Origin: Macrostomum lignano
Lineage: Eukaryota
Length of the DNA: 33,275 nucleotides
Assembly: GCA_002269645.1 (NCBI GenBank)
Contig: NIVC01001806.1
Coordinates: 1 to 33,275, forward strand
Direction: 5' to 3'
The position numbers and the translations under genes are program-made. Below the pieces are notes generated by a model. It was not told the DNA's origin. It was given only the letters and a program-made list of their open reading frames with translations, and searched no databases. Below, in pieces: positions 1,533 through 29,424 of this stretch. The stretch's first letter is position 1. Each line of letters starts with the position of its first letter.

Positions 1533-12649
<11,117 letters not shown>

Positions 12650-15324
12650 ATCTGGGCACAGACCACACAGGGACTCTGAGGGAACTTGCTCTCTGTGCTC
12701 AAATGAGCATAATGGCTTCATTTGTATCTTTCCGAAGGCCCGAAATCTGAGGGGAGCTGAGACTGAGACGCATGTAGACTGCAGCAGTAATACTAGTCCT
12801 GCAGTATTACCCGTAATGCAATATTACTGTCATGTAATGTTACTGGTAATGCAACATTACTGGTCATGTAATACGAGTACTACTAGTAATACAATATTAC
12901 TGGTCTTGTAATATTACTGGTAATGTAATATTACTGAACAGTAGAAACAACAACAGGGGCACTCGGGAATTGTCTTGATGTATCATTTTAATCCTTATTT
13001 AATTGTCTATTAACCAATATTTACCCTATAATGCAGGATGCAACTCTTGTGCATTTGCACTGCCAGAATAATAGAATTGTACATGAGTGCTGCATTTTGT
13101 GAACAATTGCATCGCTGATTTGCTTTCATTTTTCATAAGAAAACCTCATAAAAACCGTGCTTAGGCGCTTCTTCTATTCCAATAATCGCGTTTTGTGCGC
13201 TCCGTAGTTAGCCGACTTTTCGTTGATTGAGCTTCTATTTATTTGACAGCATGCGGTTCATTCACGTCAGGATTTTTTGCTGTTGTTTTTAACTCCCCAT
13301 GGTGTCGTCCTTTCGCTGTTTTTTTTAAATTAAACAAATAAACAGCTCATTGTGTGCCGAGTCCGACTGACTATAATGTCAACAGCGGCTAGCAAACTTT
13401 TCAACAAAAGGTACCTTCAGGCCATAGATCTTATATTCTCTCTGTATATATGATCTTTGCTTCAGGCCCTGAATTCTCAATTAAAAAATTATCTACAGGG
13501 GGCGCTCGACGACGCAACTGTCTAAAGCAAAAACCTCGATTCACTCCACACACCACTAAGTATGAATAAGTACTGTACATGTATATGGAAAGAAGCTTAT
13601 TGCGTACAAGATATTCCCACTCTATTCTTGCCTTTTAATGCCACAGACTACATCAAAATTAGCGGGCAGTTAAGTATCAAGGACCACTAGAAGAAGACAA
13701 CCAAGAGACCTGAGCCTATAGTATGAAGTTAGCCAAGCAACTTCTAATGCTTGGTTTTCTGACACTCGAAGTATTTTGTCAATTGTTTTGGATTCAATCA
13801 CTCCGTCCATTCAATTAAAGTAGTTTAGAATATACTGACAATACTTAGGACTGCCAACCCAAAGGAAAAGGGGCGCCATCATCGCCAGCCACAAGAAGTT
13901 ATTAGACTATTCTTTAGAATTCTCGCCTAAATTCCTAAAATTTCTTTTGATTGCCCTTAGTCCTCATCTAGACTCAAATGCCCGCTGACTTCGTTAGTTG
14001 TATTTTTTCATTTTTACTTATTTTAGCTTACTATACTACATTCTGAGGAAATTAATAGCCTAAACTCACGCATCTAAAGGAAGACTTTGTTTGAATTGAT
14101 TGTAAAATTTCGCGTAAATTTGGTATGAAAAATTTGAGTAAAGTTCAGCAATGTTCTATTGATCTTCAGATTGAGACTTGACAGTCTATCTACTTTACCA
14201 AAAATATATTTTTTTGATATATATATGTATATTCTTGTAAGGTTAAGATTTTTTTTTAAAACTAACAGGATTTTTAACATAAAACAAGTAGCTAAAAATG
14301 CAGTAGTTATTAGTTTGCTATAGTGCAGGTCGGCTTGCATGGTCCCAGGTCAATTCGGTGACAAGACATGTCGGTGACAACAACTTCGGTGACAACTTGG
14401 GACGTTTCGGTGACACCAGTGGTCAATTCGGTGACAAGCTTTTTAGACTTGATTTGACTATTTTTCGTTGTTAAATATTAAAATATTGCTGTTAATAAAC
14501 TCTTATTAAAGTAATAAAGGTTCGTATGCTATCAATTATCATTTTGTTTGAGTGCGTTTCGAGGCATAACACTTAATGTTTAACAGCGCGCACTTAATTT
14601 TATCCATACTTTTAATTTTTCAACTCAAGTCAACGAGAATTGATGTTTCGATTTTTTATACTACATCTACATTTACATGTATTGTAGATGTACATGTACG
14701 TCTTAAAAGCCATTGAACGAGTTCAGAAAACAACTGTATATCTATAGGACTATAGCGTAGCTTATGACTGTACATGTTTTTATGTGCTAATTCAGGGACT
14801 ATAACTTATAAGGCAAGGGGCGCCAATAGGGGCGGACGTACCCGTGGATAGAGCTTGATAGAACTTATTGAGCCCCCAAAACCTAAGTTTGCACCCTTTA
14901 AAAACTAGATTTTTCGCCTCCTACACGCATTTTTGCACCCCTAGCTTAAAAATTGGCGCCCCTCATACTCATGAATAATTGGGCCCAAAACTAAGACCGA
15001 CGCCCCCCGCCCCCTCCCCCCTTTGATGTATAGTCAAAGGCTATAGTTTCTTATTGGTGTCTGATTTTCGTAAACAAATTTATTGTGGTTGTTACTAAAT
15101 CAAGTTATTTCAAAGCAATTAGTTACAGTACGTACAGTGTAAGTATATGAAATTAATCGATAGTATAATGAGCTGAATGATACATCTAGTTCAGTTATTT
15201 AGCAGTGTATTTTAGCAAGGATAGAGAAACAGTACACATATTTGCACCAAAAAGGCGTCAACACAAGTCGACACAACATGTACAGTACAATATAATGAGT
15301 ATACGAATGAGAATGAGAGTAATT

Positions 15325-15441
15325 CAGCTGGCGCAACCAGCTGGGGGGAGGGCGGTTGCCCCTCCTTCGGGGGACCGGAAAAAATCAAAGGGGACCAAGC
15401 GAATGATTCGCCCCCTCAACAAATTTCTGGTTGCGCTACTG
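15325..15441. mobile_element. 117-bp MITE-like hairpin inside the MULE
   Basis: CAGCTGGCGCAACCAG ... CTGGTTGCGCTACTG imperfect inverted ends. Confidence 0.45.
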
Positions 15442-15565
15442 CGAGAGTACATGGTATACGCGAGTAGTATAGTTCCCTAAATATCCGGCCTTGATTCTAG
15501 TACATGCACAGTCTAGTGTATATGTCTAGTACATATGTAGTCTTTGGTGCAACACAGTCGTCATG

Positions 15566-16306
15566 TCACTTCGGATTAAAGAGACGACCACAGGATTTAA
15601 GCAGCCGCCGAGTGCTTCGAGTACCTTGTTCATGTTCCGCCCAGTAGCGAAACAAACGAGACTGAACTGTGCGGTAGCCTTGCCGCTGCTCTCGACGCAG
15701 TACCCCTCTGGACAGCAGGTGAGCCTGGAGTGGCACCAGGATAGCTTCCTCGTGGAGCAGTTGCAGCAACAGATAGAACTGGAGGTTGCGACTCCCAGCT
15801 TTACGGTTTAGGCGATAGTGCCAGCCCTCCAGGTCGTTGTTGGTCCTGATGGGCTGACCAAACACGCAAATGTCATCCGCTTTCCAGTTGCTGCCTTCGC
15901 CCAACCATGTACTGCCAATGTACTCGCATAGTTCCTGCAGTCTTTCGTCTGCCTGAGCAGCTTGCGAAGCTCGGAGGCTTTCAAACACCTCGTTAATCTC
16001 GTCACGTGGCAGGTACGGCAGTGCCATCAACTTCTGGACGAACCGTTCTGTGCCATCATCATCACGATAGGACTGCTGCAGACCCAGGTTCTGAACTTTT
16101 CGCCAGACTGCCTGTGTCCAGTGGAAATTGCAGCCCTGCACTTCAGCCTGCGGAAAGATGCGTCGAACCGCCTTCCAGGCTGGCTGCTCATAGTCGAGAA
16201 CGAATCTCGCGGGTGAGAAATCGGGAGCGAATCTTCGAACTTCCCTTAAAATGGCTTTGTAGTCCCGGGTTCGTCTCCCAGACATGATAATGAAGGCCAA
16301 TGGTAC
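15566..16306 (-). CDS. Transposase exon 3 (VPLAF...; second D, CxxH, catalytic E)
   Basis: aacag|GTA CCA TTG ... stop at 15566. Confidence 0.92.
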   Translation of the reverse strand, partial: VPLAFIIMSGRRTRDYKAILREVRRFAPDFSPARFVLDYEQPAWKAVRRIFPQAEVQGCNFHWTQAVWRKVQNLGLQQSYRDDDGTERFVQKLMALPYLPRDEINEVFESLRASQAAQADERLQELCEYIGSTWLGEGSNWKADDICVFGQPIRTNNDLEGWHYRLNRKAGSRNLQFYLLLQLLHEEAILVPLQAHLLSRGVLRREQRQGYRTVQSRLFRYWAEHEQGTRSTRRLLKSCGRLFNPK

Positions 16307-18088
16307 CTGTTTTTGGTTTAAATAAAACGGCTTTTAGAAAAAAAATTAAATATATAGGATGCATAAACTATGATTTGCGTATTCCGCTACTAAGAGTAAC
16401 ACCATTTGATTTAGAGTTTCTTTGCTATGCCTCCATGCTTTATACTTGGTGGGCTTTATACTTTATGCTTTATACTTTATAAGCGTTTCAGTAGGAACTT
16501 AATTATTACCTGTTTTATTTGTCCTTCCGCCCTCAGAAAACCGTGAAGTGAATAGAGCTGCACAAAAGGCCTTCTTACGATTGAGAAGGTTCCGTCCATG
16601 TAGATGTCGGAAGTTTTTTTCAACAAAGCAATCTGTTGCTCAGTCGCAAAGACAAGGTGACGACGGTCCCCAACTCGAACATCGCTTCTGTAAAAGCCAT
16701 CGGGAATCGCTTCGTGCTGCAGCTCAAAGTTTAATGTCTTTGGCTCCTCTGGCCGTTGCCTTTCTCGAAAACGATTAGCTGTTCTAGCAAGATTCGCTGG
16801 ATTTGGCAAGTTTTTAGCCTCTGACGAACGATAACTGTGTAGAAGTCGCTTCTCAGATAGAGCCGCAGCAGATTTGAAGACATCCGCAGCTGCTGATGTC
16901 TTCACGTCTCGAATAATTTTTCGTACTGCACAAGCATCAGCTGTTGGTGCATGGCAGTGGTTCCTTTTTCCTGGTCGGAAGTCTTCACCGGCTCTGCGAT
17001 TTAGGGTCGCACAGCATGGCGTATGTCGATTGCGCTGAGTGCATCTGTAGTATTCGTGATCACCACGCCTACGGTGAAAACCATAGCTGTATCCTTTTGA
17101 GGAAACAACAAGGACTGAACCTCTATTGCTTCCGTTTTGAAGTACCTCAAATGTCTCTGGACGATTGTGATCAGCGACTGGTTGAGGGTCTGGGTCTTCA
17201 ATCGATGAATCAGCAGTAGCAGCAACTTGGATCTCAACATCGCTCTCTACCTCATCACTTTCGCTACCACCGGCAGCAGCAACTTCGATTTCGGCATCGC
17301 TCTCTACCTCATCACCACCGGCAGCAGCAACTTCGATTTCGGCATCGCTCTCTACCTCATCACCACCGGCAGCAGCAACATCGATTTCGGCATCGCTCTC
17401 TACCTCATCACCACCGGCAGCAGCAACTTCGATTTCGGCATCGCTCTCTACCTCATCACCACCGGCAGCAGCAACATCGATTTCGGCATCGCTCTCTACC
17501 TCATCACCACCGGCAGCAGCAACATCGATTTCGGCATCGCTCTCTACCTCATCACCACCGGCAGCAGCAACTTCAACCTCAGCATCGCTCTCTACATGTA
17601 CCTCCTGAGTAGTGCAGATCATGCAGCACCAAGAAAAAGAACTCTTCTTCATCAACTTCTTATACTGTGCAGCAGAAATGAACGATGCTCCTAAAATAAA
17701 AAGCAAAAACAATTTCAGCCATTTATCATCTCTCCACATACCCTCTCTCCTCTCTACCTCCTCTCCCCACCTTCTCTTCCCTACTCTCTTTTCCTCTTCA
17801 CTCTCTCCACTACCTTCTTCCCCTCTACCCTCTCTCCCCACCTTCTCTCCCCTACCCTCTTTTCCTCTTCACTCTCTCCTCTACCTTCTCCCCCCTCTAC
17901 CCTCTTTCTCCTCTTCCATTTTAAGAGTGAATGCACACTAAGTTGATGGAATGCAGAATATAGGGCATAAACTTACCAGTCAAACACAGTCGATGGAACC
18001 AATGTTTGCACTTGTCACAATTTAATGCAGGCTCCTCGTCAGTTACTGCTCTGACACACGCTGGACAGACGTCTTCTTCGACTTCCAT
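15566..18088 (-). CDS. PHD finger-acidic repeat-FLYWCH-MULE DDE transposase; complement(join(15566-16306,16510-17690,17977-18088)), 677 aa
   Basis: ATG at 18088; GT-AG introns 17976-17691 (phase 1) and 16509-16307 (phase 0); no stops. PHD: CPAC..CDKC..WFHRLC|..WCCMIC. FLYWCH-like: GYSY..YYRC..C..HCH. MULE: YMDGTF, VLDYE, CNFHWTQA, TNNDLEGWH. Confidence 0.9.
16510..17690 (-). CDS. Transposase exon 2 (end of PHD, acidic repeats, FLYWCH, first catalytic D)
   Basis: tttag|GA GCA ... CAG|gtaat. Confidence 0.9.
17221..17597 (-). repeat. 48-bp coding minisatellite x about 8 (VESDAEI[D/E]VAAAGGDE) within the transposase
   Basis: In-frame tandem units in exon 2. Confidence 0.95.
17720..17915. repeat. 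CT-rich low-complexity tract in transposase intron 1
   Basis: Almost pure C/T on the + strand. Confidence 0.85.
17977..18088 (-). CDS. Transposase exon 1 (MEVEEDVCPACVRAVTDEEPALNCDKCKHWFHRLCLT-G), N-terminal part of PHD finger
   Basis: Ends G|gtaagt; phase fits exon 2; not in the ORF track. Confidence 0.85.
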
Positions 18089-18832
18089 CAGACAATTGAG
18101 CTGGTATTCTTTATCTAGCTAGTTGCTTTTTAGATGCAGAGAAGATATTAAGTCGATATTCTTGAGTGTTAAAGAGTAAATATATTATAGTGCGCCGACT
18201 GGTAGCTATGGGTCTTGCGTTCAATTGCTTCTGTACAAGTATGGATATAGGACGCATGCGCAATATACATGTAATGTGATGGCGTTTTAACCAATAGAAT
18301 ATCACAATATCACAGAATTTCGATTGCGTAGAAAGTAAGCAATTCTGATTGACCACATCCGTTTAGATTACCTAGCATAACTTAATGCTGGTTCTGTGAT
18401 TCGTGGATTTAGCGGTTAGCAACCAGTCATTGTGATGTAATGAGTGCCAACAAGAGCGCAGCAATTTTCTTATATAGTATAATTATCACATTCACTTAAC
18501 TGTGTTGCTGAATGAACAAATAAGTGTTATTCATTTACTAAATGTAGAAGACCAAGTTTTGTATGACTTTACATTTGTACACATGTGTTTATGTTAACAT
18601 GGTCACGATCGCCACGACCATAAGTTCACAGTACAGCTTTGTCAATAAGCGCCAGAATTAATTAAATGATAAATTTCAAGCCAACTCATCCATAATCTAT
18701 ACTCTGTGAGGCGCACATACAGTAGCGGATCTAAAATTTCATTTGGGGGCCGAAGGGGGGCCGGGGCGTCGGTCCAAGTTTTGGGCCCCAATAATTCATG
18801 AGTGGCGCCAATTTTTGGCGTGGCATCAATGA

Positions 18833-19104
18833 GGGGCGCCAATGAGGGGTGGCGTGGCGTCAATGAGGGGCGCCAATGAGGGGTGGCGTGGCGTCAATGA
18901 GGGGCGCCAATGAGGGGTGGCGTGGCGTCAATGAGGGGCGCCAATGAGGGGTGGCGTGGCGTCAATGAGGGGCGCCAATGAGGGGTGGCGTGGCGTCAAT
19001 GAGGGGCGCCAATGAGGGGTGGCGTGGCGTCAATGAGGGGCGCCAATGAGGGGTGGCGTGGCGTCAATGAGGGGCGCCAATGAGGGGTGGCGTGGCGTCA
19101 ATGA
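18833..19104. repeat. 34-bp GC-rich minisatellite (GGGGCGCCAATGAGGGGTGGCGTGGCGTCAATGA) x8 at the inner edge of the right MULE TIR
   Basis: 272 bp = 8 x 34. Confidence 0.95.
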
Positions 19105-20127
19105 GGGGCGCCAATTTTTAAGCTAGGGGTGCAAAAATGCGTGTAGGAGGCGAAAAATCTAGTTTAAAGGGTGCAAACTTAGGTTTTGGGGGCTCAATAA
19201 GTTCTATCAAGCTCTATCCACGGGTACGTCCGCCCCTATTGGCGCCCCTTGCCTTATAGTCCCTGAATTAGCACATAAAAACATGTACAGTCATAAGCTA
19301 CGCTATAGTCCTATAGATATACAGTTGTTTTCTGAACTCGTTCAATGGCTTTTAAGACGTACATGTACATCTACAATACATGTAAATGTAGATGTAGTAT
19401 AAAAAATCGAAACATCAATTCTCGTTGACTTGAGTTGAAAAATTAAAAGTATGGATAAAATTAAGTGCGCGCTGTTAAACATTAAGTGTTATGCCTCGAA
19501 ACGCACTCAAACAAAATGATAATTGATAGCATACGAACCTTTATTACTTTAATAAGAGTTTAGTAACAGCATATTTTAATATTTAACAACGAAAAATAGT
19601 CAAATCAAGTCTAAAAAGCTTGTCACCGAATTGACCACTGGTGTCACCGAAACGTCCCAAGTTGTCACCGAAGTTGTTGTCACCGACATGTCTTGTCACC
19701 GAATTGACCTGGGACCGCTTGCATCAGCATTGCATATACTTTCAACTCAACTCAAGTTAGGCCTATAACTTATATGTCCAGCCATAGCATAAGGGGATGA
19801 TACTGATAGGCATAGCCTAGGCCTAAACCCATAGGCATAGGCCATAGTCAGGATGATGTATCATCTGAGCAGAAAAAAAACATTTTTTGCTGTTTGGTAG
19901 ACATCCTAGGCCTACTCTGTGTTAGAAATTTAAGTCAGAAAGCTTTTTGATCAAAAATGCAAGTTCTGTACAATAATTGCTAGAGTTCCGGCACTGGAGC
20001 CCATTTTCTAATGGCTAGGCCTGGATCTGGCAATGCCATTATAGGGCCTAATGTAACAAGAACATTTTTTGCTATACATTGTGATTAAAATATAGCATAG
20101 GCCTAGCATTAGCTATCCTTAGGCTTA

Positions 20128-22583: not shown

Positions 22584-23281
22584 TACTATGCTTTATAGTT
22601 AATATTATATTATTTTGCTTAAATGCCTCATTTGGCTTGCATCAAACATATTGAGCTGCAAAATGTGCCTAAAACAACTCAATGTTTGTCTCATCTGTCC
22701 ACAAGACATTTTGCTAATAGCTGTCTGGCTGCTGTAGAGCAAATTTTTGATGAGCTTGGTGACGCTTATTGGATAGAAAAGGCTTCTTGCAAGCAACTCA
22801 TATCTACAATATTTGTGACTGCATCATGCATTGTTTTAAATGATTGCAATCAGCATGTGTTTGCTACAAACATAAGGGTTTGCTAACTTCTGTGATGGCA
22901 GTTTTTTTGTTACTGGGCGATTGTGTCCAAAAAATGCAATATTTTTTTGCATGAAATTTACAAAACTATATTTAATAAGTGTTTATTTGAATAAAATCTG
23001 AGAATAGTTCATTCATGCTAAAAGAAATTAAAGTGTTTTTTTTTAAAATTCACAGCTTTTCTTGCAAGTGTATGCATGTAAGACTGGTAGAATTTCTATT
23101 GCAGATAGGAGCAGTTAAGCTTTTTTTAGTCAAAAGCTTCAATCCAAGTAACATTTTCCACTTGAAGTGTGACCGTCATTCATATGCTCAAGTATCTTAT
23201 GTGCAGCCAATCTCTGCCTTAAATTAATAACTTGAAATGAAAAGTAAAAATTGGAAATTGCAAAATGCACATTTGCTTTTT

Positions 23282-24929
23282 CATTGTGCAATCATAATTA
23301 TTGACTGTTGCTCCCCCATCCCAGTACCCATAGCCAGCCATGAGCTACATTGTGCAATCATAATTATTGACTGTTGCTCCCCCATCCCAGTACCCACAGC
23401 CAGCCATGAGCTACATTGTGCAATCATAATTATTGACTGTTGCTCCCCCATCCCAGTACCCACAGCCAGCCATGAGCTACATTGTGCAATCATAATTATT
23501 GACTGTTGCTCCCCCATCCCAGTACCCACAGCCAGCCATGAGCTACATTGTGCAATCATAATTATTGACTGTTGCTCCCCCATCCCAGTACCCACAGCCA
23601 GCCATGAGCTACATTGTGCAATCATAATTATTGACTGTTGCTCCCCCATCCCAGTACCCACAGCCAGCCATGAGCTACATTGTGCAATCATAATTATTGA
23701 CTGTTGCTCCCCCATCCCAGTACCCACAGCCAGCCATGAGCTACATTGTGCAATCATAATTATTGACTGTTGCTCCCCCATCCCAGTACCCACAGCCAGC
23801 CATGAGCTACATTGTGCAATCATAATTATTGACTGTTGCTCCCCCATCCCAGTACCCACAGCCAGCCATGAGCTACATTGTGCAATCATAATTATTGACT
23901 GTTGCTCCCCCATCCCAGTACCCACAGCCAGCCATGAGCTACATTGTGCAATCATAATTATTGACTGTTGCTCCCCCATCCCAGTACCCACAGCCAGCCA
24001 TGAGCTACATTGTGCAATCATAATTATTGACTGTTGCTCCCCCATCCCAGTACCCACAGCCAGCCATGAGCTACATTGTGCAATCATAATTATTGACTGT
24101 TGCTCCCCCATCCCAGTACCCACAGCCAGCCATGAGCTACATTGTGCAATCATAATTATTGACTGTTGCTCCCCCATCCCAGTACCCACAGCCAGCCATG
24201 AGCTACATTGTGCAATCATAATTATTGACTGTTGCTCCCCCATCCCAGTACCCACAGCCAGCCATGAGCTACATTGTGCAATCATAATTATTGACTGTTG
24301 CTCCCCATCCCAGTACCCACAGCCAGCCATGAGCTACATTGTGCAATCATAATTATTGACTGTTGCTCCCCCATCCCAGTACCCACAGCCAGCCATGAGC
24401 TACATTGTGCAATCATAATTATTGACTGTTGCTCCCCATCCCAGTACCCACAGCCAGCCATGAGCTACATTGTGCAATCATAATTATTGACTGTTGCTCC
24501 CCCATCCCAGTACCCACAGCCAGCCATGAGCTACATTGTGCAATCATAATTATTGACTGTTGCTCCCCCATCCCAGTACCCACAGCCAGCCATGAGCTAC
24601 ATTGTGCAATCATAATTATTGACTGTTGCTCCCCCATCCCAGTACCCACAGCCAGCCATGAGCTACATTGTGCAATCATAATTATTGACTGTTGCTCCCC
24701 CATCCCAGTACCCACAGCCAGCCATGAGCTACATTGCGCAATCATAATTATTGACTGTTGCTCCCCCATCCCAGTACCCACAGCCAGCCATGAGCTACAT
24801 TGTGCAATCATAATTATTGACTGTTGCTCCCCCATCCCAGTACCCACAGCCAGCCATGAGCTACATTGTGCAATCATAATTATTGACTGTTGCTCCCCCA
24901 TCCCAGTACCCACAGCCAGCCATGAGCTA
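23282..24929 (+). repeat. 66-bp minisatellite x25; the last unit supplies the SMAP start codon
   Basis: Unit CATTGTGCAATCATAATTATTGACTGTTGCTCCCCCATCCCAGTACCCACAGCCAGCCATGAGCTA; 23x66 + 2x65 = 1648 bp. Confidence 0.97.
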
Positions 24930-25294
24930 CCTGCACCAGCAGCAGAAGCGGAACGGCAGGTCGGCTGCCTCAGGCGGCAAGGCGGACAAGGATAGAGAGC
25001 TGCTGCAGGAGGCCTTAGCCTCGCTGCTCAAAGAGGAGGACAACAAGTACTGCGCCGACTGCGAGGCCAAGAGTCCGCGCTGGGCCAGCTGGAACATCGG
25101 CGTGTTCATCTGCATCCGGTGCGCCGGCATCCACCGAAAGTTGGGCGTGCACATCTCCAAGGTGAAGTCCGTTAATTTGGACTCGTGGACTCTGGACCAG
25201 GTGGCCGGGGTGGCCGCTATGGGCAACACGCTGGCCAGGGCCGCCTACGAGGCCAATCTGCCTAGCAGCTTTCGCAGGCCGAACAGCGACGCTG
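24922..25294 (+). CDS. SMAP1: SMAP exon 1 (ArfGAP domain)
   Basis: ATG AGC TAC CTG...; donor G|gtggg. Confidence 0.92.
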
Positions 25295-27924
25295 GTGGGT
25301 TTTTTTGCTCTTTATGGCGGCTTTGAGGCTATTTACTTTACCTATAATTCGTACCGGGGCTTTGGGCGCTGCCGCAAACCGCAGATACCAGATCAGGCAT
25401 CTGTCTTTACTGCTCTCTCACGAAAAAAAGCTGTGAAAAAGTAGAGCGTCTACTCATCTTTTAGTAGTTTGTCTGCGCATGGTCATTTGAATTTATTGTG
25501 GCAGCTAAAATTTTCTTTCCTTCCTCGGGGTTTGCGGCCTGAGGAGCATGTGGGGGGGGGTTAAGAATGAACACCAAGCATTTAACTCGATGTACACAAG
25601 TGAACGCAAGACGGACGAAACTCAGCCTAGGGGCAGGCCCAATCTATCTCAGCCAATGAGAGAGCAGTAAGGAGAGAGGTCAAAATTAGACGGACGAAAC
25701 CTAGGAGGCAAGTCCAATCTAGCTCAGCCAATGAGAGCGCAGTAAGTAGAGAGGTAAATATTAGACGGACGAAACCTAGGAGACAGGTCCAATCTAGCTC
25801 AGCCAATGAGAGAGCAGTAAGGAGAGGTCAAAGTCAGACACAAGCTTGCCAGTTTATCGACCTGGTTGGGGTGCTGAGACGCCACCCCTTTTCTCCTGCT
25901 CGCTATGCAGACGCACTGGATTTGGGGTTTTAAAAGTTTTATTGCAATTTTAAGTCCGAAATGAATTTCTTTCTAAATAATCTCGAGTCTGGAGTCGGTC
26001 AAACATGATGAAGATACAGTTTAAAGGTTTTGCTTGCGGAAAGCCGGAGGCGATTGTTGCAAGTGCAAAAACTCCTAACATTTGTGCACAATAAATTAAG
26101 TTGACCGGCATAAGAAATCGAAGTATTTTTCATTTTAAAAGTCATTTCCCCCTCCCCCACCCCTGACCCGTCCAGGCATGGAGCAGTTCATCAGGGCCAA
26201 GTACGAGGACCGGCGCTACCTCATCGCCAACTTTAAGCCGCCCCGGCCGGACCCGTCCTCGGTGTACAGCCTCGTCAAGTCATCCGCCGCCACAGTCGCG
26301 CAGCAGCAGCGGCCCGCTGCCTCCATCGGGGCGATTCCGCGACCGCCTGCCGCTGCCTCGGCTCCGGCAAGCTCAGCGACTGCGCCCGCAACCGCTGCGA
26401 GCAAGGCAGCTGAAGCGGCTCCGCAGCCGACGCCACCGCCAGCAGCGCGGCCGGCGCAAGACTTGCTGCTGATTGGCGACGATGACCTGCTTGGCGGCGG
26501 CTCATCAACGGCCGCGTCAAGGAACGGGTCGGGACTGGCTACTTCGCCGGACTCCGAGTTCGGCAACTTCACCGCTGCCGTGGGCAACGGGGCACTGCAG
26601 CAGCAGCAGGCGGCGGCCACCCAGCCGCGAGTCAATCCGGATTTGATCTTTGATGATGGCGGAAGCTGGCCAACCTCGTCAGTGGCGGATTCTTCATCAT
26701 CAGCTGCCGCCGCAGCACCGCCAAAAATGTCGGCCAAAGACTCCATAATGGCCCTGTACGCTGCCCAGCCGCCGGGGATGCAGCAGGTGTTCGCACCAAG
26801 CGGCATGCACTACTCGGCGAGTAGCCCGATGCTGGCAACCGGGCAGCAGGCGCACATGTACCAACAGCAACAGCAGCACCAGTTCTACCAGCAGCAGGTG
26901 ATGCAGACTGGCTTGTACAGCCAAACTGCTGGCACCCTGCTGTATTCCACTGGGCAGCAGCAGCAGCAGCCTCAGTTTAATCAGGCTAGTGACAACTTTC
27001 AACTGCCGCAGCAACAGCAGCCGTTCCAGCAGCAACAGCAGCCATTCCAGCAGCAACAGCAGCCGTTCCAGCAGCAACAGCAGCCATTCCAGCAGCAACA
27101 GCAGCCGTTCCAGCAGCAACAGCAGCCATTCCAGCAGCAACAGCAGCCGTTCCAGCAGCAACAGCAGCCGTTCCAGCAGCAACAGCAGCCGTTCCAGCAG
27201 CAACAGCAGCAACAGCAGCCGTTCCAGCAGCAACAGCAGCCGTTCCAGCAGCAACAGCAGCAACAGCAGCCGTTCCAGCAGCAACAGCAGCAGCTGTTCT
27301 ACGGGCCAACCCCAACAAGTCAGGCCGCTTATCTGCAGCAGGTACATGTGATAAAGGCCAGGGATGAAGGAGCAGCGGGATACTGAGGCCAGGGATGAAG
27401 GAGCAGGGGATACTGAGGCCAGGGATAAAGGAGCAGCGGAATACTGAGGCCAGGGATGAAGGAGCAGGGGATACTGAGGCCAGGGATGAATGAGCAGCGG
27501 GATACTGAGGCCAGGGATGAAGGAGCAGTGGGAAGCTGAGGCCATGGATGAAGGAGCAGTGGGAAGCTGAGACCAGGGATGAAGGAGCAGTGGGAAGCTG
27601 AGACCAGGGATGAAGGAGCAGTGGGAAGCTGAGACCAGGGATGAAGGACCAGTGGGAAGCTGAGACCAGGGATGAAGGAGCAGCGGGAAGCTGAGACCAG
27701 GGATGAAGGAGCAGCGGGAAGCTGAGACCAGGGATGAAGGAGCAGCGGGAAGCTGAGACCAGGGATGAAGGAGCAGCGGGAAGCTGAGGCCATGGATGCA
27801 GATGAGAGGGGGGGCAGAAGAAGCCGATGCCAATGAAGAAAGATGTCTGAGCAACCAGCCGCTGTCCCCCGCAGATTCAGAGCCAGATGGCGGGCCTGGG
27901 AATCGCTGGCAAGCAGCAGCAGCC

Positions 27925-27955
<31 letters not shown>

Positions 27956-27997
27956 TCGTCAAGCGGCGGCGGCTTCCCAACGGACATCTGGAACTAA
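24922..27997 (+). CDS. SMAP1: SMAP-type ArfGAP (stromal membrane-associated protein; SMAP1/SMAP2 co-ortholog); join(24922-25294,26176-27341,27875-27997), 553 aa
   Basis: ArfGAP zinc finger CADC...[35 protein letters not shown]; [10 protein letters not shown]; DLL-type motifs; KDSIMALY; C-terminus QSQMAGLGI...TDIWN*. GT-AG introns in phases 1 and 0; AATAAA at 28048. Confidence 0.9.
25609..25838. repeat. About 75-bp tandem repeat x3 with CCAAT motifs, SMAP intron 1
   Basis: AGACGGACGAAA...CCAATCT..CTCAGCCAATGAGAG repeated three times. Confidence 0.85.
26176..27341 (+). CDS. SMAP1: SMAP exon 2 (end of GAP domain, low-complexity and Q-rich region)
   Basis: ctgacccgtccag|GC ATG ... CAG|gtaca. 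Confidence 0.9.
27008..27294 (+). repeat. Coding 18-bp repeat giving (QQQQPF)n / poly-Q in SMAP
   Basis: CAGCAACAGCAGCC[G/A]TTC units in frame. Confidence 0.95.
27356..27798. repeat. 30-31-bp minisatellite (GGCCAGGGATGAAGGAGCAGCGGGATACTGA family) x about 14, SMAP intron 2
   Basis: Tandem units; the variant changes along the array (ATACTGAGGC to AAGCTGAGAC). Confidence 0.95.
27875..27997 (+). CDS. SMAP1: SMAP exon 3 (IQSQMAGLG...FPTDIWN*)
   Basis: tcccccgcag|ATT ... TAA. Confidence 0.8.
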
Positions 27998-28953: not shown

Positions 28954-29424
28954 TCAACGGCGGCGGTAGGCCTTGCCATGACCGTAAGAGTCGTAGCCTG
29001 AACCATAGCCCGATCCGTAGCCGGAACCGTAGCCTGATCCGTAGCCTGAACCTTGGCCCGATCCGTAGCCGGAACCGTAGCCTGAACCTTGGCCCGATCC
29101 GTAGCCTGAACCCTGGCCCGATCCGTAGCCTGAACCTTGGCCCGATCCGTAGCCTGAACCCTGGCCCGATCCATAGCCGGAACCATAGCCTGATCCGTAG
29201 CCTGAACCTTGGCCCGATCCGTAGCTGCCATGACCGTCTTGTTCGTCGTAGTGCCCGGCCCCGTAGCCTGAACCTTGGCCCGATCCGTAGCTGCCATAAC
29301 CGTCTTGTTCGTCGTAGTGCCCGGCCCCGTAGCCGTCATAGTAGGTGTCGTAGATATCGACTCTGTCATAGCCGTCACCGTAGGCCACGGCAATCAGGGC
29401 GGCGAGGACAAGCAGGCACTTCAT
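28954..29424 (-). CDS. Secreted Gly/Tyr/Ser-rich repetitive protein, 156 aa (candidate eggshell or other extracellular structural protein)
   Basis: Signal-peptide-like [16 protein letters not shown]; repeats GYGSGQGS and [11 protein letters not shown]; basic tail HGKAYRRR*; TATA box upstream; AATAAA on the - strand near 28803-28808. Confidence 0.85.

Follow-up and report, generated by a model that had tools for sequence, protein, structure and literature searches.

A young 66-bp minisatellite spanning the putative splice acceptor, leader and start codon of one SMAP gene copy in Macrostomum lignano

The SMAP gene and the array at its start codon

The window, that is, the whole stretch of 33,275 nucleotides that was analysed, corresponds to the contig NIVC01001806.1 of the Macrostomum lignano assembly Mlig_3_7. 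The gene located at the array described below, BOX15_Mlig025950g2, encodes a SMAP-type ArfGAP. Its three exons, separated by introns of 881 and 533 nt and joined at canonical GT/AG sites, yield a protein of 553 amino acids. An ArfGap domain with a C4 zinc finger was identified at the N-terminus (Pfam PF01412, 4.2e-40, residues 30-140). The nearest matches were three M. lignano UniProt entries and two GenBank proteins, and the top named relatives were the animal proteins SMAP1/SMAP2. With these the protein shares the N-terminal ArfGap domain, the CX2CX16CX2C finger and approximately 60-70% identity over the domain, whereas its long, Q-rich and repeat-encoded C-terminal half is specific to the lineage. 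No SMAP entry was found in the supplements of PMC8629364 and PMC5816591. The features of the locus are the following, where SL denotes the spliced leader.

22977..23281, + strand: left flank, unique and AT-rich (outron or promoter region), about 92-93% identical to the sister locus
23282..24930, + strand: 66-bp minisatellite of 25 units (TRF and unit parsing), each unit representing positions -57 to +9 of the SMAP start region
24877..24879, + strand: in-frame TAA of the last unit, shutting the frame 42 nt 5' of the real ATG
24881..24887, + strand: TATTGAC, the last unit's branch-point motif and a perfect match to YNYURAY, with the branch A at 24886, 20 nt 5' of the G in the AG
24888..24906, + strand: pyrimidine tract (14/17 pyrimidines) and AG of the last unit, candidate 3' splice acceptor 1
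24907..24921, + strand: leader of 15 nt, TACCCACAGCCAGCC, separating acceptor 1 from the ATG, in-frame YPQPA, holding the second AG (acceptor 2, with the exon start then at 24916)
24922..25294, + strand: coding part of SMAP exon 1, running from its ATG (24922) up to the GT donor, with the zinc finger CADC...CIRC; 373/373 identical to the sister copy
24931..24939, + strand: CTGCACCAG, a possible internal alternative acceptor; the GenBank CDS of the sister copy begins directly after it, with the SL AUG in frame (MQQKRNG...)
26176..27341, + strand: SMAP exon 2, including a coding 21-bp repeat (QQQQPFQ)n
27875..27997, + strand: SMAP exon 3 to the stop TAA, its end coinciding with the GenBank CDS end

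No coding ORF was found in the left flank (22977..23281). Directly after it, positions 23282-24930 of the window form a single tandem array with a period of 66, 25.0 copies, 99% matches and a score of 3270 in TRF. Unit-by-unit parsing revealed a head-to-tail arrangement in which 20 of the 25 units are identical and the mutual divergence of the units is only about 0.25%. Variants were observed in unit 1 (CACAG to CATAG), in units 16 and 18 (C5 to C4, giving a length of 65 bp) and in unit 23 (one T to C substitution). That 25 near-identical tandem copies arose by chance can be ruled out.

TATTGAC, TGTTGCTCCCC(C)ATCCCAG and CCAGCCATGAGCTAC are present in all 25 units, as is a second AG. The elements of each unit follow one another as in-frame TAA, then TATTGAC, a tract of 17 nt of which 14 are pyrimidines, the CAG, TACCCACAG with the second AG, CCAGCC and finally ATG AGC TAC, and unit-unit junctions read GAGCTAC/ATTGTGCAATCATAA. 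TATTGAC is a perfect YNYURAY, with the branch A placed 20 nt ahead of the AG. In units 2-25, the TAA ends the upstream open reading frame (uORF) opened by the ATG of the preceding unit. The ATGs of units 1-24 thus encode MSYIVQS-stop 23 times and MSYIAQS-stop once, corresponding to 23 occurrences of ATGAGCTACATTGTGCAATCATAA and one GCG variant. Only the ATG of the 25th unit, at 24922, enters the ArfGAP frame (MSYLHQQQ...); TACCCACAGCCAGCCATGAGCTAC is followed by CTGCAC in the last unit and in the single-copy locus, and by ATTGTG in the upstream units. The preliminary description of this DNA had proposed precisely such a 25-copy array of acceptor and start units with 24 short uORFs, and TRF and unit parsing agree on it. 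It had also taken each unit as 66 bp long with the same second AG, which holds for most of them; units 16 and 18 are 65 bp long, and in unit 1 the second AG lies within CATAG.

Several other readings of the array were discarded. Long ORFs running across it on both strands (371 and 349 amino acids) are artefacts, the period being divisible by 3. An Rfam search of the array returned no match, and the RNA fold of three units compared with shuffles gave z = 0.06, indicating no special structure, so the possibility of a structured RNA was dropped. A likeness between the unit and the SL (AATTATTG and ATTTATTG, respectively) is too short to carry meaning.

The array resembles the minisatellite/VNTR type known from the vicinity of start codons in its head-to-tail, near-identical units of tens of bp, in its position at a gene start, in its difference in copy number (25 versus 1) and in an origin by slippage or unequal exchange. 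Minisatellites occur in promoters or 5' leaders, such as the 28-bp repeat in the TYMS 5'UTR and the CSTB dodecamer. Here, however, the unit comprises a complete acceptor, leader and start codon, so that every copy makes an AUG and a potential 3' splice site, and the variation in copy number is seen between subgenome copies and not between individuals. The unusual feature is that the repeated unit spans the whole acceptor/leader/AUG cassette; the structure is otherwise of the known type.

The array lies in a repeat-rich background. The 33-kb window holds 28 separate tandem-repeat loci, which occupy 21% of it, and the 66-bp array is the largest and cleanest among them. Other arrays of the window sit in introns, and even in the SMAP coding sequence. 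Tandem repeats make up 15% of the M. lignano genome (PMC5730564), and repeats are reported to widen the spacing of trans-spliced genes, for which neutral accumulation has been hypothesised (PMC8629364).

The sister locus and the age of the expansion

A sister locus (L002) was identified on NIVC01000022.1 with the gene BOX15_Mlig030995g2 (protein PAA93722.1), and 23 kb around PAA93722.1 were compared with the window. The two loci are collinear, including the O-GlcNAcase upstream, a 31-bp intronic array, the 21-bp coding array and a Gly/Tyr-rich neighbour, and their DNA is 88-96.6% identical. At the 5' end of SMAP, the sister locus carries exactly one 66-bp segment between the same flanks, and TRF detected no 66-bp array in its 23 kb. 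The left flank and unit 1 of the window align to positions 9622-9991 of the sister locus, and unit 25 and exon 1 to positions 9926-10823; since the flanks with units 1 and 25 fall onto a single segment, the window contains 24 extra units. The comparison by region gave the following values.

57 nt before the ATG, window versus sister locus: 57/57 identical
Exon 1, window versus sister locus: 373/373 identical
300 nt upstream of the unit, window versus sister locus: 91.8%
Intron 1, window versus sister locus: 87.8%

While exon 1 is the same in both, the copies can be told apart in exon 2, for example by PAASIGA versus PAAAASIGA. At the divergence of the flank, zero changes in the 57-nt leader have a chance of about 0.01-0.02. 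As judged from these alignments, conservation falls on the single cassette, at a level like that of coding sequence, and the array is without conservation. Because the units are 99% alike, whereas divergence between the loci amounts to about 8% for the upstream flank and 12% for intron 1, the expansion appears much younger than the split of the copies. On this comparison, the array is a young expansion specific to one gene copy. The amplification of the gene's own acceptor, leader and start cassette, as anticipated in the preliminary description, is borne out by the sister locus, and the single-copy ancestral unit sought there was found at this paralogous locus.

The DV1 line of M. lignano contains three subgenomes, S, L1 and L2 (PMC10733133), and the window and the sister locus are best read as subgenome copies. 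Their copy numbers of 25 and 1 within collinear flanks accordingly represent a comparison of subgenome copies, not of individuals. A distant paralogue (L001, 43% identity) has no array; its leader is ordinary, and a consensus CTGCAG acceptor lies some 70 nt ahead of its ATG.

Alternatively, the copy number, or the array itself, may be a mistake of the assembly, which is PacBio-based, in a short contig of 33 kb. The 65-bp units represent a homopolymer C deletion, typical of uncorrected long-read errors, and Mlig_3_7 is stated to hold wrongly expanded or collapsed variants (PMC10733133). Assemblers, however, rarely invent 24 clean extra units, the substitution variants (units 1 and 23) speak for genuinely separate copies, and long reads easily span an array of 1.6 kb. 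We therefore regard an artefact of assembly as very unlikely.

Acceptor evidence, spliced leader and 5' ends of the gene models

Candidate acceptors were defined by a YNYTRAY motif 15-40 nt upstream, the absence of AG between the branch A and the acceptor, at least 80% pyrimidines over 15 nt, and CAG. These properties were found in all 25 units and in only 1 of the 1372 other CAG sites on both strands of the window. Four gene models are relevant to the position of the 5' end. The three ML2-based UniProt models P0001, P0234 and P0002 start with YPQPAMSYL, that is, with the TAC directly after CCCAG; P0001 is of the sister type (0 mismatches to P0233, and identical to the protein of the sister locus), and P0234 and P0002 are of the window type. 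The GenBank model of the window contig, PAA63891.1, which is labelled 'partial', starts with PQPAMSYL at 24910 within the 25th unit, 3 nt past the AG and not directly at it. All four models are thus 5'-partial and begin 0-3 nt after CCCAG, at 5' ends which were taken from deposited models and may mirror conventions of assembly or trimming. In the protein collections, a search centred on exon 1 and look-ups with ORFs of the window and with P0001 brought up no Logan or RNA-derived contig for SMAP; query length seems to limit this search, which also missed the M. lignano proteins. The in-frame TAA located 28 nt upstream of the acceptor is included in none of the four, which suggests that the modelled transcripts end sharply at the acceptor. 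Taken together, these observations support CCCAG/TAC as the 5' boundary of the mature mRNA, and the putative acceptor of the preliminary description gains credibility from both the site count and the model starts.

M. lignano is a flatworm with SL trans-splicing, as the preliminary description had presumed possible: its published SL, CGGTCTCTTACTGCGAAGACTCAATTTATTGCATG, ends in ATG (PMC8629364) and is also treated in PMC5173321. The SL is given to 30-39% of the genes, with conserved genes in excess (PMC8629364; PMC5730564). Flatworm SLs carry a terminal AUG from which translation can be initiated (Cheng et al. 2006, cited in PMC12582326), and wide sharing of trans- and cis-acceptors is reported for flatworms (PMC12582326). 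The acceptor motif for trans-splicing in M. lignano is [T/C]TNCAG (PMC8629364). The site in the array reads TCCCAG, sharing the CAG and the pyrimidines with this motif and carrying a C at position 2; the published motif itself occurs at only 9551 of 21754 sites (PMC8629364).

The SL is 35 nt long, and its AUG would be in frame at all three candidate sites: 24907, the second AG (24916) and 24940. The last of these is where the GenBank CDS of the sister copy starts, right after CACCAG. Joined at 24907, the SL AUG opens an N-terminal extension in the SMAP frame. The in-frame AUG of the SL had been overlooked in the preliminary description. Judging from sequence and gene models, SMAP most likely receives the SL by trans-splicing at CCCAG/TAC, and a trans-spliced mRNA whose SL had been trimmed would explain the 5'-partial state of all models.

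A transcription start would place the 5' end at AG/TAC equally well. Under this alternative, each unit would be a core promoter, with the AT-rich CATAATTAT about 28 nt upstream of the initiator-like CCAGTA and a TSS at about unit position 42-44, so that the array would consist of 25 tandem promoters. The spacing between the TATA-like and Inr-like elements is right, and from -57 on the leader shows 100% conservation. As matches, however, the TATA and Inr elements fall far behind the branch point, pyrimidine tract and CAG. The three ML2-based models share an exact start codon, a pattern that a trimmed SL junction typically leaves and a ragged TSS does not. Furthermore, each model is 5'-partial and has the SL AUG in frame, and the 'g2' gene names suggest that transcription was seen upstream. 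A homologue search with the O-GlcNAcase exons, directed at whether the upstream gene is 'g1' of this transcriptional unit, yielded short proteins alone, none under an M. lignano name. A promoter array is quite unlikely on this balance.

The acceptor may instead be cis-spliced to an untranslated first exon located further upstream, with the array inside a 5' intron. The sharing of trans- and cis-acceptors in flatworms would allow this, and a consensus donor, the only GTAAG of the left flank, is present at 23079. This donor is not conserved, however, reading GCAAG in the sister locus, and an exon further upstream is missing from all four gene models, which stop at the acceptor. An upstream exon of this kind seems improbable. 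No GT[AG]AG donor was found within the unit. Splicing inside the array would have to proceed from ATT/GTGCAA to the next CCCAG, with introns of 39 nt and in-frame exons of 27 nt adding an N-terminal (YPQPAMSYI)n to SMAP. Although 27 nt keeps the frame and the acceptor is good, GTGCA does not fit the species donor GT[G/A]AG, the introns of SMAP are far longer (881 and 533 nt) and the repeat (YPQPAMSYI)n appears in no gene model, which leaves this arrangement with next to no likelihood.

Acceptor choice, upstream open reading frames and significance

The explanation that we favour, with a probability of about 60%, is that the array is a young, near-neutral minisatellite in the outron and that the productive mRNA would be formed from the last acceptor. 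In one of the subgenome copies of SMAP, the 66 bp between -57 and +9 may have been amplified by replication slippage or unequal exchange, and this segment happens to hold what appears to be a full 3' acceptor (branch point, pyrimidine tract and CAG), the 15-nt leader and the ATG. SL trans-splicing at CCCAG/TAC would then discard all upstream sequence, including the first 24 units, as outron. The productive mRNA would consist of the 35-nt SL ending in AUG, followed by TACCCACAGCCAGCC and the AUG of SMAP, with the SL AUG in frame. If the last acceptor is used, the leader would measure 50 nt (SL plus 15 nt) and carry no uORF, and the array would be invisible in the mRNA, which matches the deposited model of the locus. 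The preliminary description had regarded exclusive use of the last acceptor as the mark of a neutral array, and the annotation agrees with such use as far as it goes.

Trans-splicing to upstream units, if it takes place, would generate by-product isoforms with 1-24 short uORFs. Joined to an upstream unit, the SL AUG opens a first uORF of 13 codons; joined to unit 1, it gives MYP-stop instead, because of the CATAG variant. Each further retained unit adds one MSYIVQS-stop with a 41-nt spacer. From what is known of reinitiation, isoforms with serial short uORFs are expected to be poorly translated. A second trans-splicing event, or decay, might conceivably correct such upstream usage.

Nothing was found in the sequence that would force the use of the last acceptor. 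Identity among the 25 acceptors extends over no fewer than 43 nt on the upstream side and 24 nt on the downstream side. For the last few of them, the distance to the exon-1 donor varies little (388 nt for unit 25 and 454 nt for unit 24). Some use of upstream acceptors is plausible, and the annotation is compatible with minor uORF-bearing isoforms from them. Short-read transcript assemblers collapse or drop isoforms bearing repeats. Co-transcriptional 'first come' kinetics would favour the upstream units, which counts against a preference for the last acceptor.

The preliminary description had gone further, proposing that the choice among 25 acceptors, whether by cis-splicing or SL trans-splicing, sets 0-24 uORFs of seven codons ahead of SMAP and thereby tunes its translation or NMD in a functional, copy-number-dependent manner. 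In its favour, the 25 acceptors are equally canonical, units 24 and 25 are indistinguishable until +24, and each upstream unit provides one uORF in good context (GCC ATG A), with the SL AUG opening the 13-codon first uORF. A hexaploid-like genome (PMC10733133) would also tolerate the damping of one copy. The sister copy, however, lacks the series, which is thus neither a conserved nor a required feature. The mRNA model deposited for the locus begins in the last unit, without a uORF. With 99% identity the array is also very young, and arrays of this sort are ubiquitous in the genome. We consider functional tuning unlikely, and the same holds for the related possibility that kinetic choice among the 25 acceptors of this SMAP homeologue yields mRNAs with 0-24 uORFs and damps the output of this copy. 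If true, the latter would represent a route by which repeats silence a homeologue or adjust its dosage following polyploidisation, and a natural assay of the choice made by the trans-spliceosome among identical sites.

A series of 7-codon uORFs with 41-nt spacers before the main ORF would recall multi-uORF control of the GCN4/ATF4 type if upstream units were retained. The uORFs of the array differ in being non-conserved, missing from the deposited model, and identical copies instead of specialised elements. Their absence from the sister copy means that the uORFs are not conserved, and, since the series is also very young and tandem repeats are common in the genome, an evolved copy-number control device is unlikely. 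The claim of copy-number-dependent control was therefore not upheld. Most likely, the array would be neutral or mildly deleterious and not a regulatory device.

A closer parallel to the favoured explanation, that of a near-neutral minisatellite in the outron, is the idea of SL outrons and 5'UTR sanitisation (Hastings 2005; Danks & Thompson 2015), in the form in which it is cited in PMC8629364. The locus resembles it in having a 3' splice site near the ATG without an upstream donor, and in that the removed upstream sequence would be free to gather repeats and AUGs. If upstream sequence is removed by SL trans-splicing, the array would be tolerated as the idea of constraint release predicts. The array differs in that the junk to be removed holds 24 perfect copies of the acceptor, and its removal hinges on the copy chosen.

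For annotation, the locus calls for caution, as neither GenBank model of SMAP is complete at the 5' end and the protein stretch encoded by repeats is modelled wrongly. In itself, the array is probably ordinary biology: another young minisatellite, in a genome of which tandem repeats make up 15-20%. It also constitutes a natural experiment, in which 25 identical serial 3' splice sites precede a conserved gene and a single-site sister copy in the same nucleus serves as an internal control, in a species with public SL-aware RNA-seq and working transgenesis. The locus could reveal whether SL trans-splicing chooses the first, the last or any acceptor, and whether trans-splicing protects genes from upstream AUGs made by repeats.

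Candidate splice sites at SMAP and the upstream O-GlcNAcase gene

The unique flank upstream of the 66-bp array contains a sole consensus 5′ splice donor, GTAAG (window 23074-23084), and its counterpart in the collinear, single-unit sister locus on NIVC01000022.1 (L002) reads GCAAG (L002 9717-9727). Within the SMAP ORF, a further site was located:
window 24931-24940; L002 9992-10001: CTGCACCAG site
The GenBank CDS of the sister copy begins directly 3′ of CTGCACCAG, six codons inside the ORF. The AUG of the spliced leader would also be in frame if joined after this sequence, reading MQQKRNG..., and the site may represent an internal alternative trans-splice acceptor or merely a ragged model end.

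Just upstream of an O-GlcNAcase coding stretch, a 16-bp array (window 7689-8106; 26 copies, 96% matches) ends approximately 30 nt 5′ of the candidate acceptor tcatcttcag, and it may constitute another repeat near a splice site. Additionally, an Rfam tRNA match of 30.4 bits, just over threshold, was found on the minus strand at 8896-8965, where ARAGORN called no tRNA; this match is probably a tRNA-derived relic or a SINE within an O-GlcNAcase intron.

A Mutator-like insertion in the window copy

The following ORFs were identified in the window:
window 15566-18088, minus strand, inside the interval 14144-19717: ORFs encoding MULE transposase (PF10551), FLYWCH and PHD domains
These ORFs include a 48-bp coding repeat (17266-17595). 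The 5.6-kb stretch holding the MULE transposase ORFs is absent from the sister locus, and the feature is therefore a Mutator-like element that inserted solely into the window copy.

Tandem repeats within and beside SMAP

Three further repeat-containing features are present in both loci:
window 27008-27291; L002 12010-12293: coding 21-bp minisatellite (QQQQPFQ) in SMAP exon 2
window 27355-27798; L002 12360-12831: 31-bp array occupying most of SMAP intron 2
window 28954-29424, minus strand; L002 13990-14325: small Gly/Tyr-rich ORF, mostly 24-bp repeats

The QQQQPFQ repeat comprises 13.7 copies in the window and 12.7 in the sister copy. The deposited protein, PAA63891.1, has 509 aa versus 553 aa for a plain conceptual splice of SMAP, and the 44 aa fewer fall within this repeat, units of which were probably skipped or collapsed in the deposited model. 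The number of 24-bp repeats in the Gly/Tyr-rich ORF is likewise unequal between the loci, and its GenBank model contains 112 aa versus 156 aa for the plain ORF. This ORF had no Pfam match, and its hydrophobic N-terminus is possibly a signal peptide. The intron 2 array, with 14.4 copies in the window, also occurs at the sister locus, where it has 15.3 copies, and therefore predates the 66-bp array.
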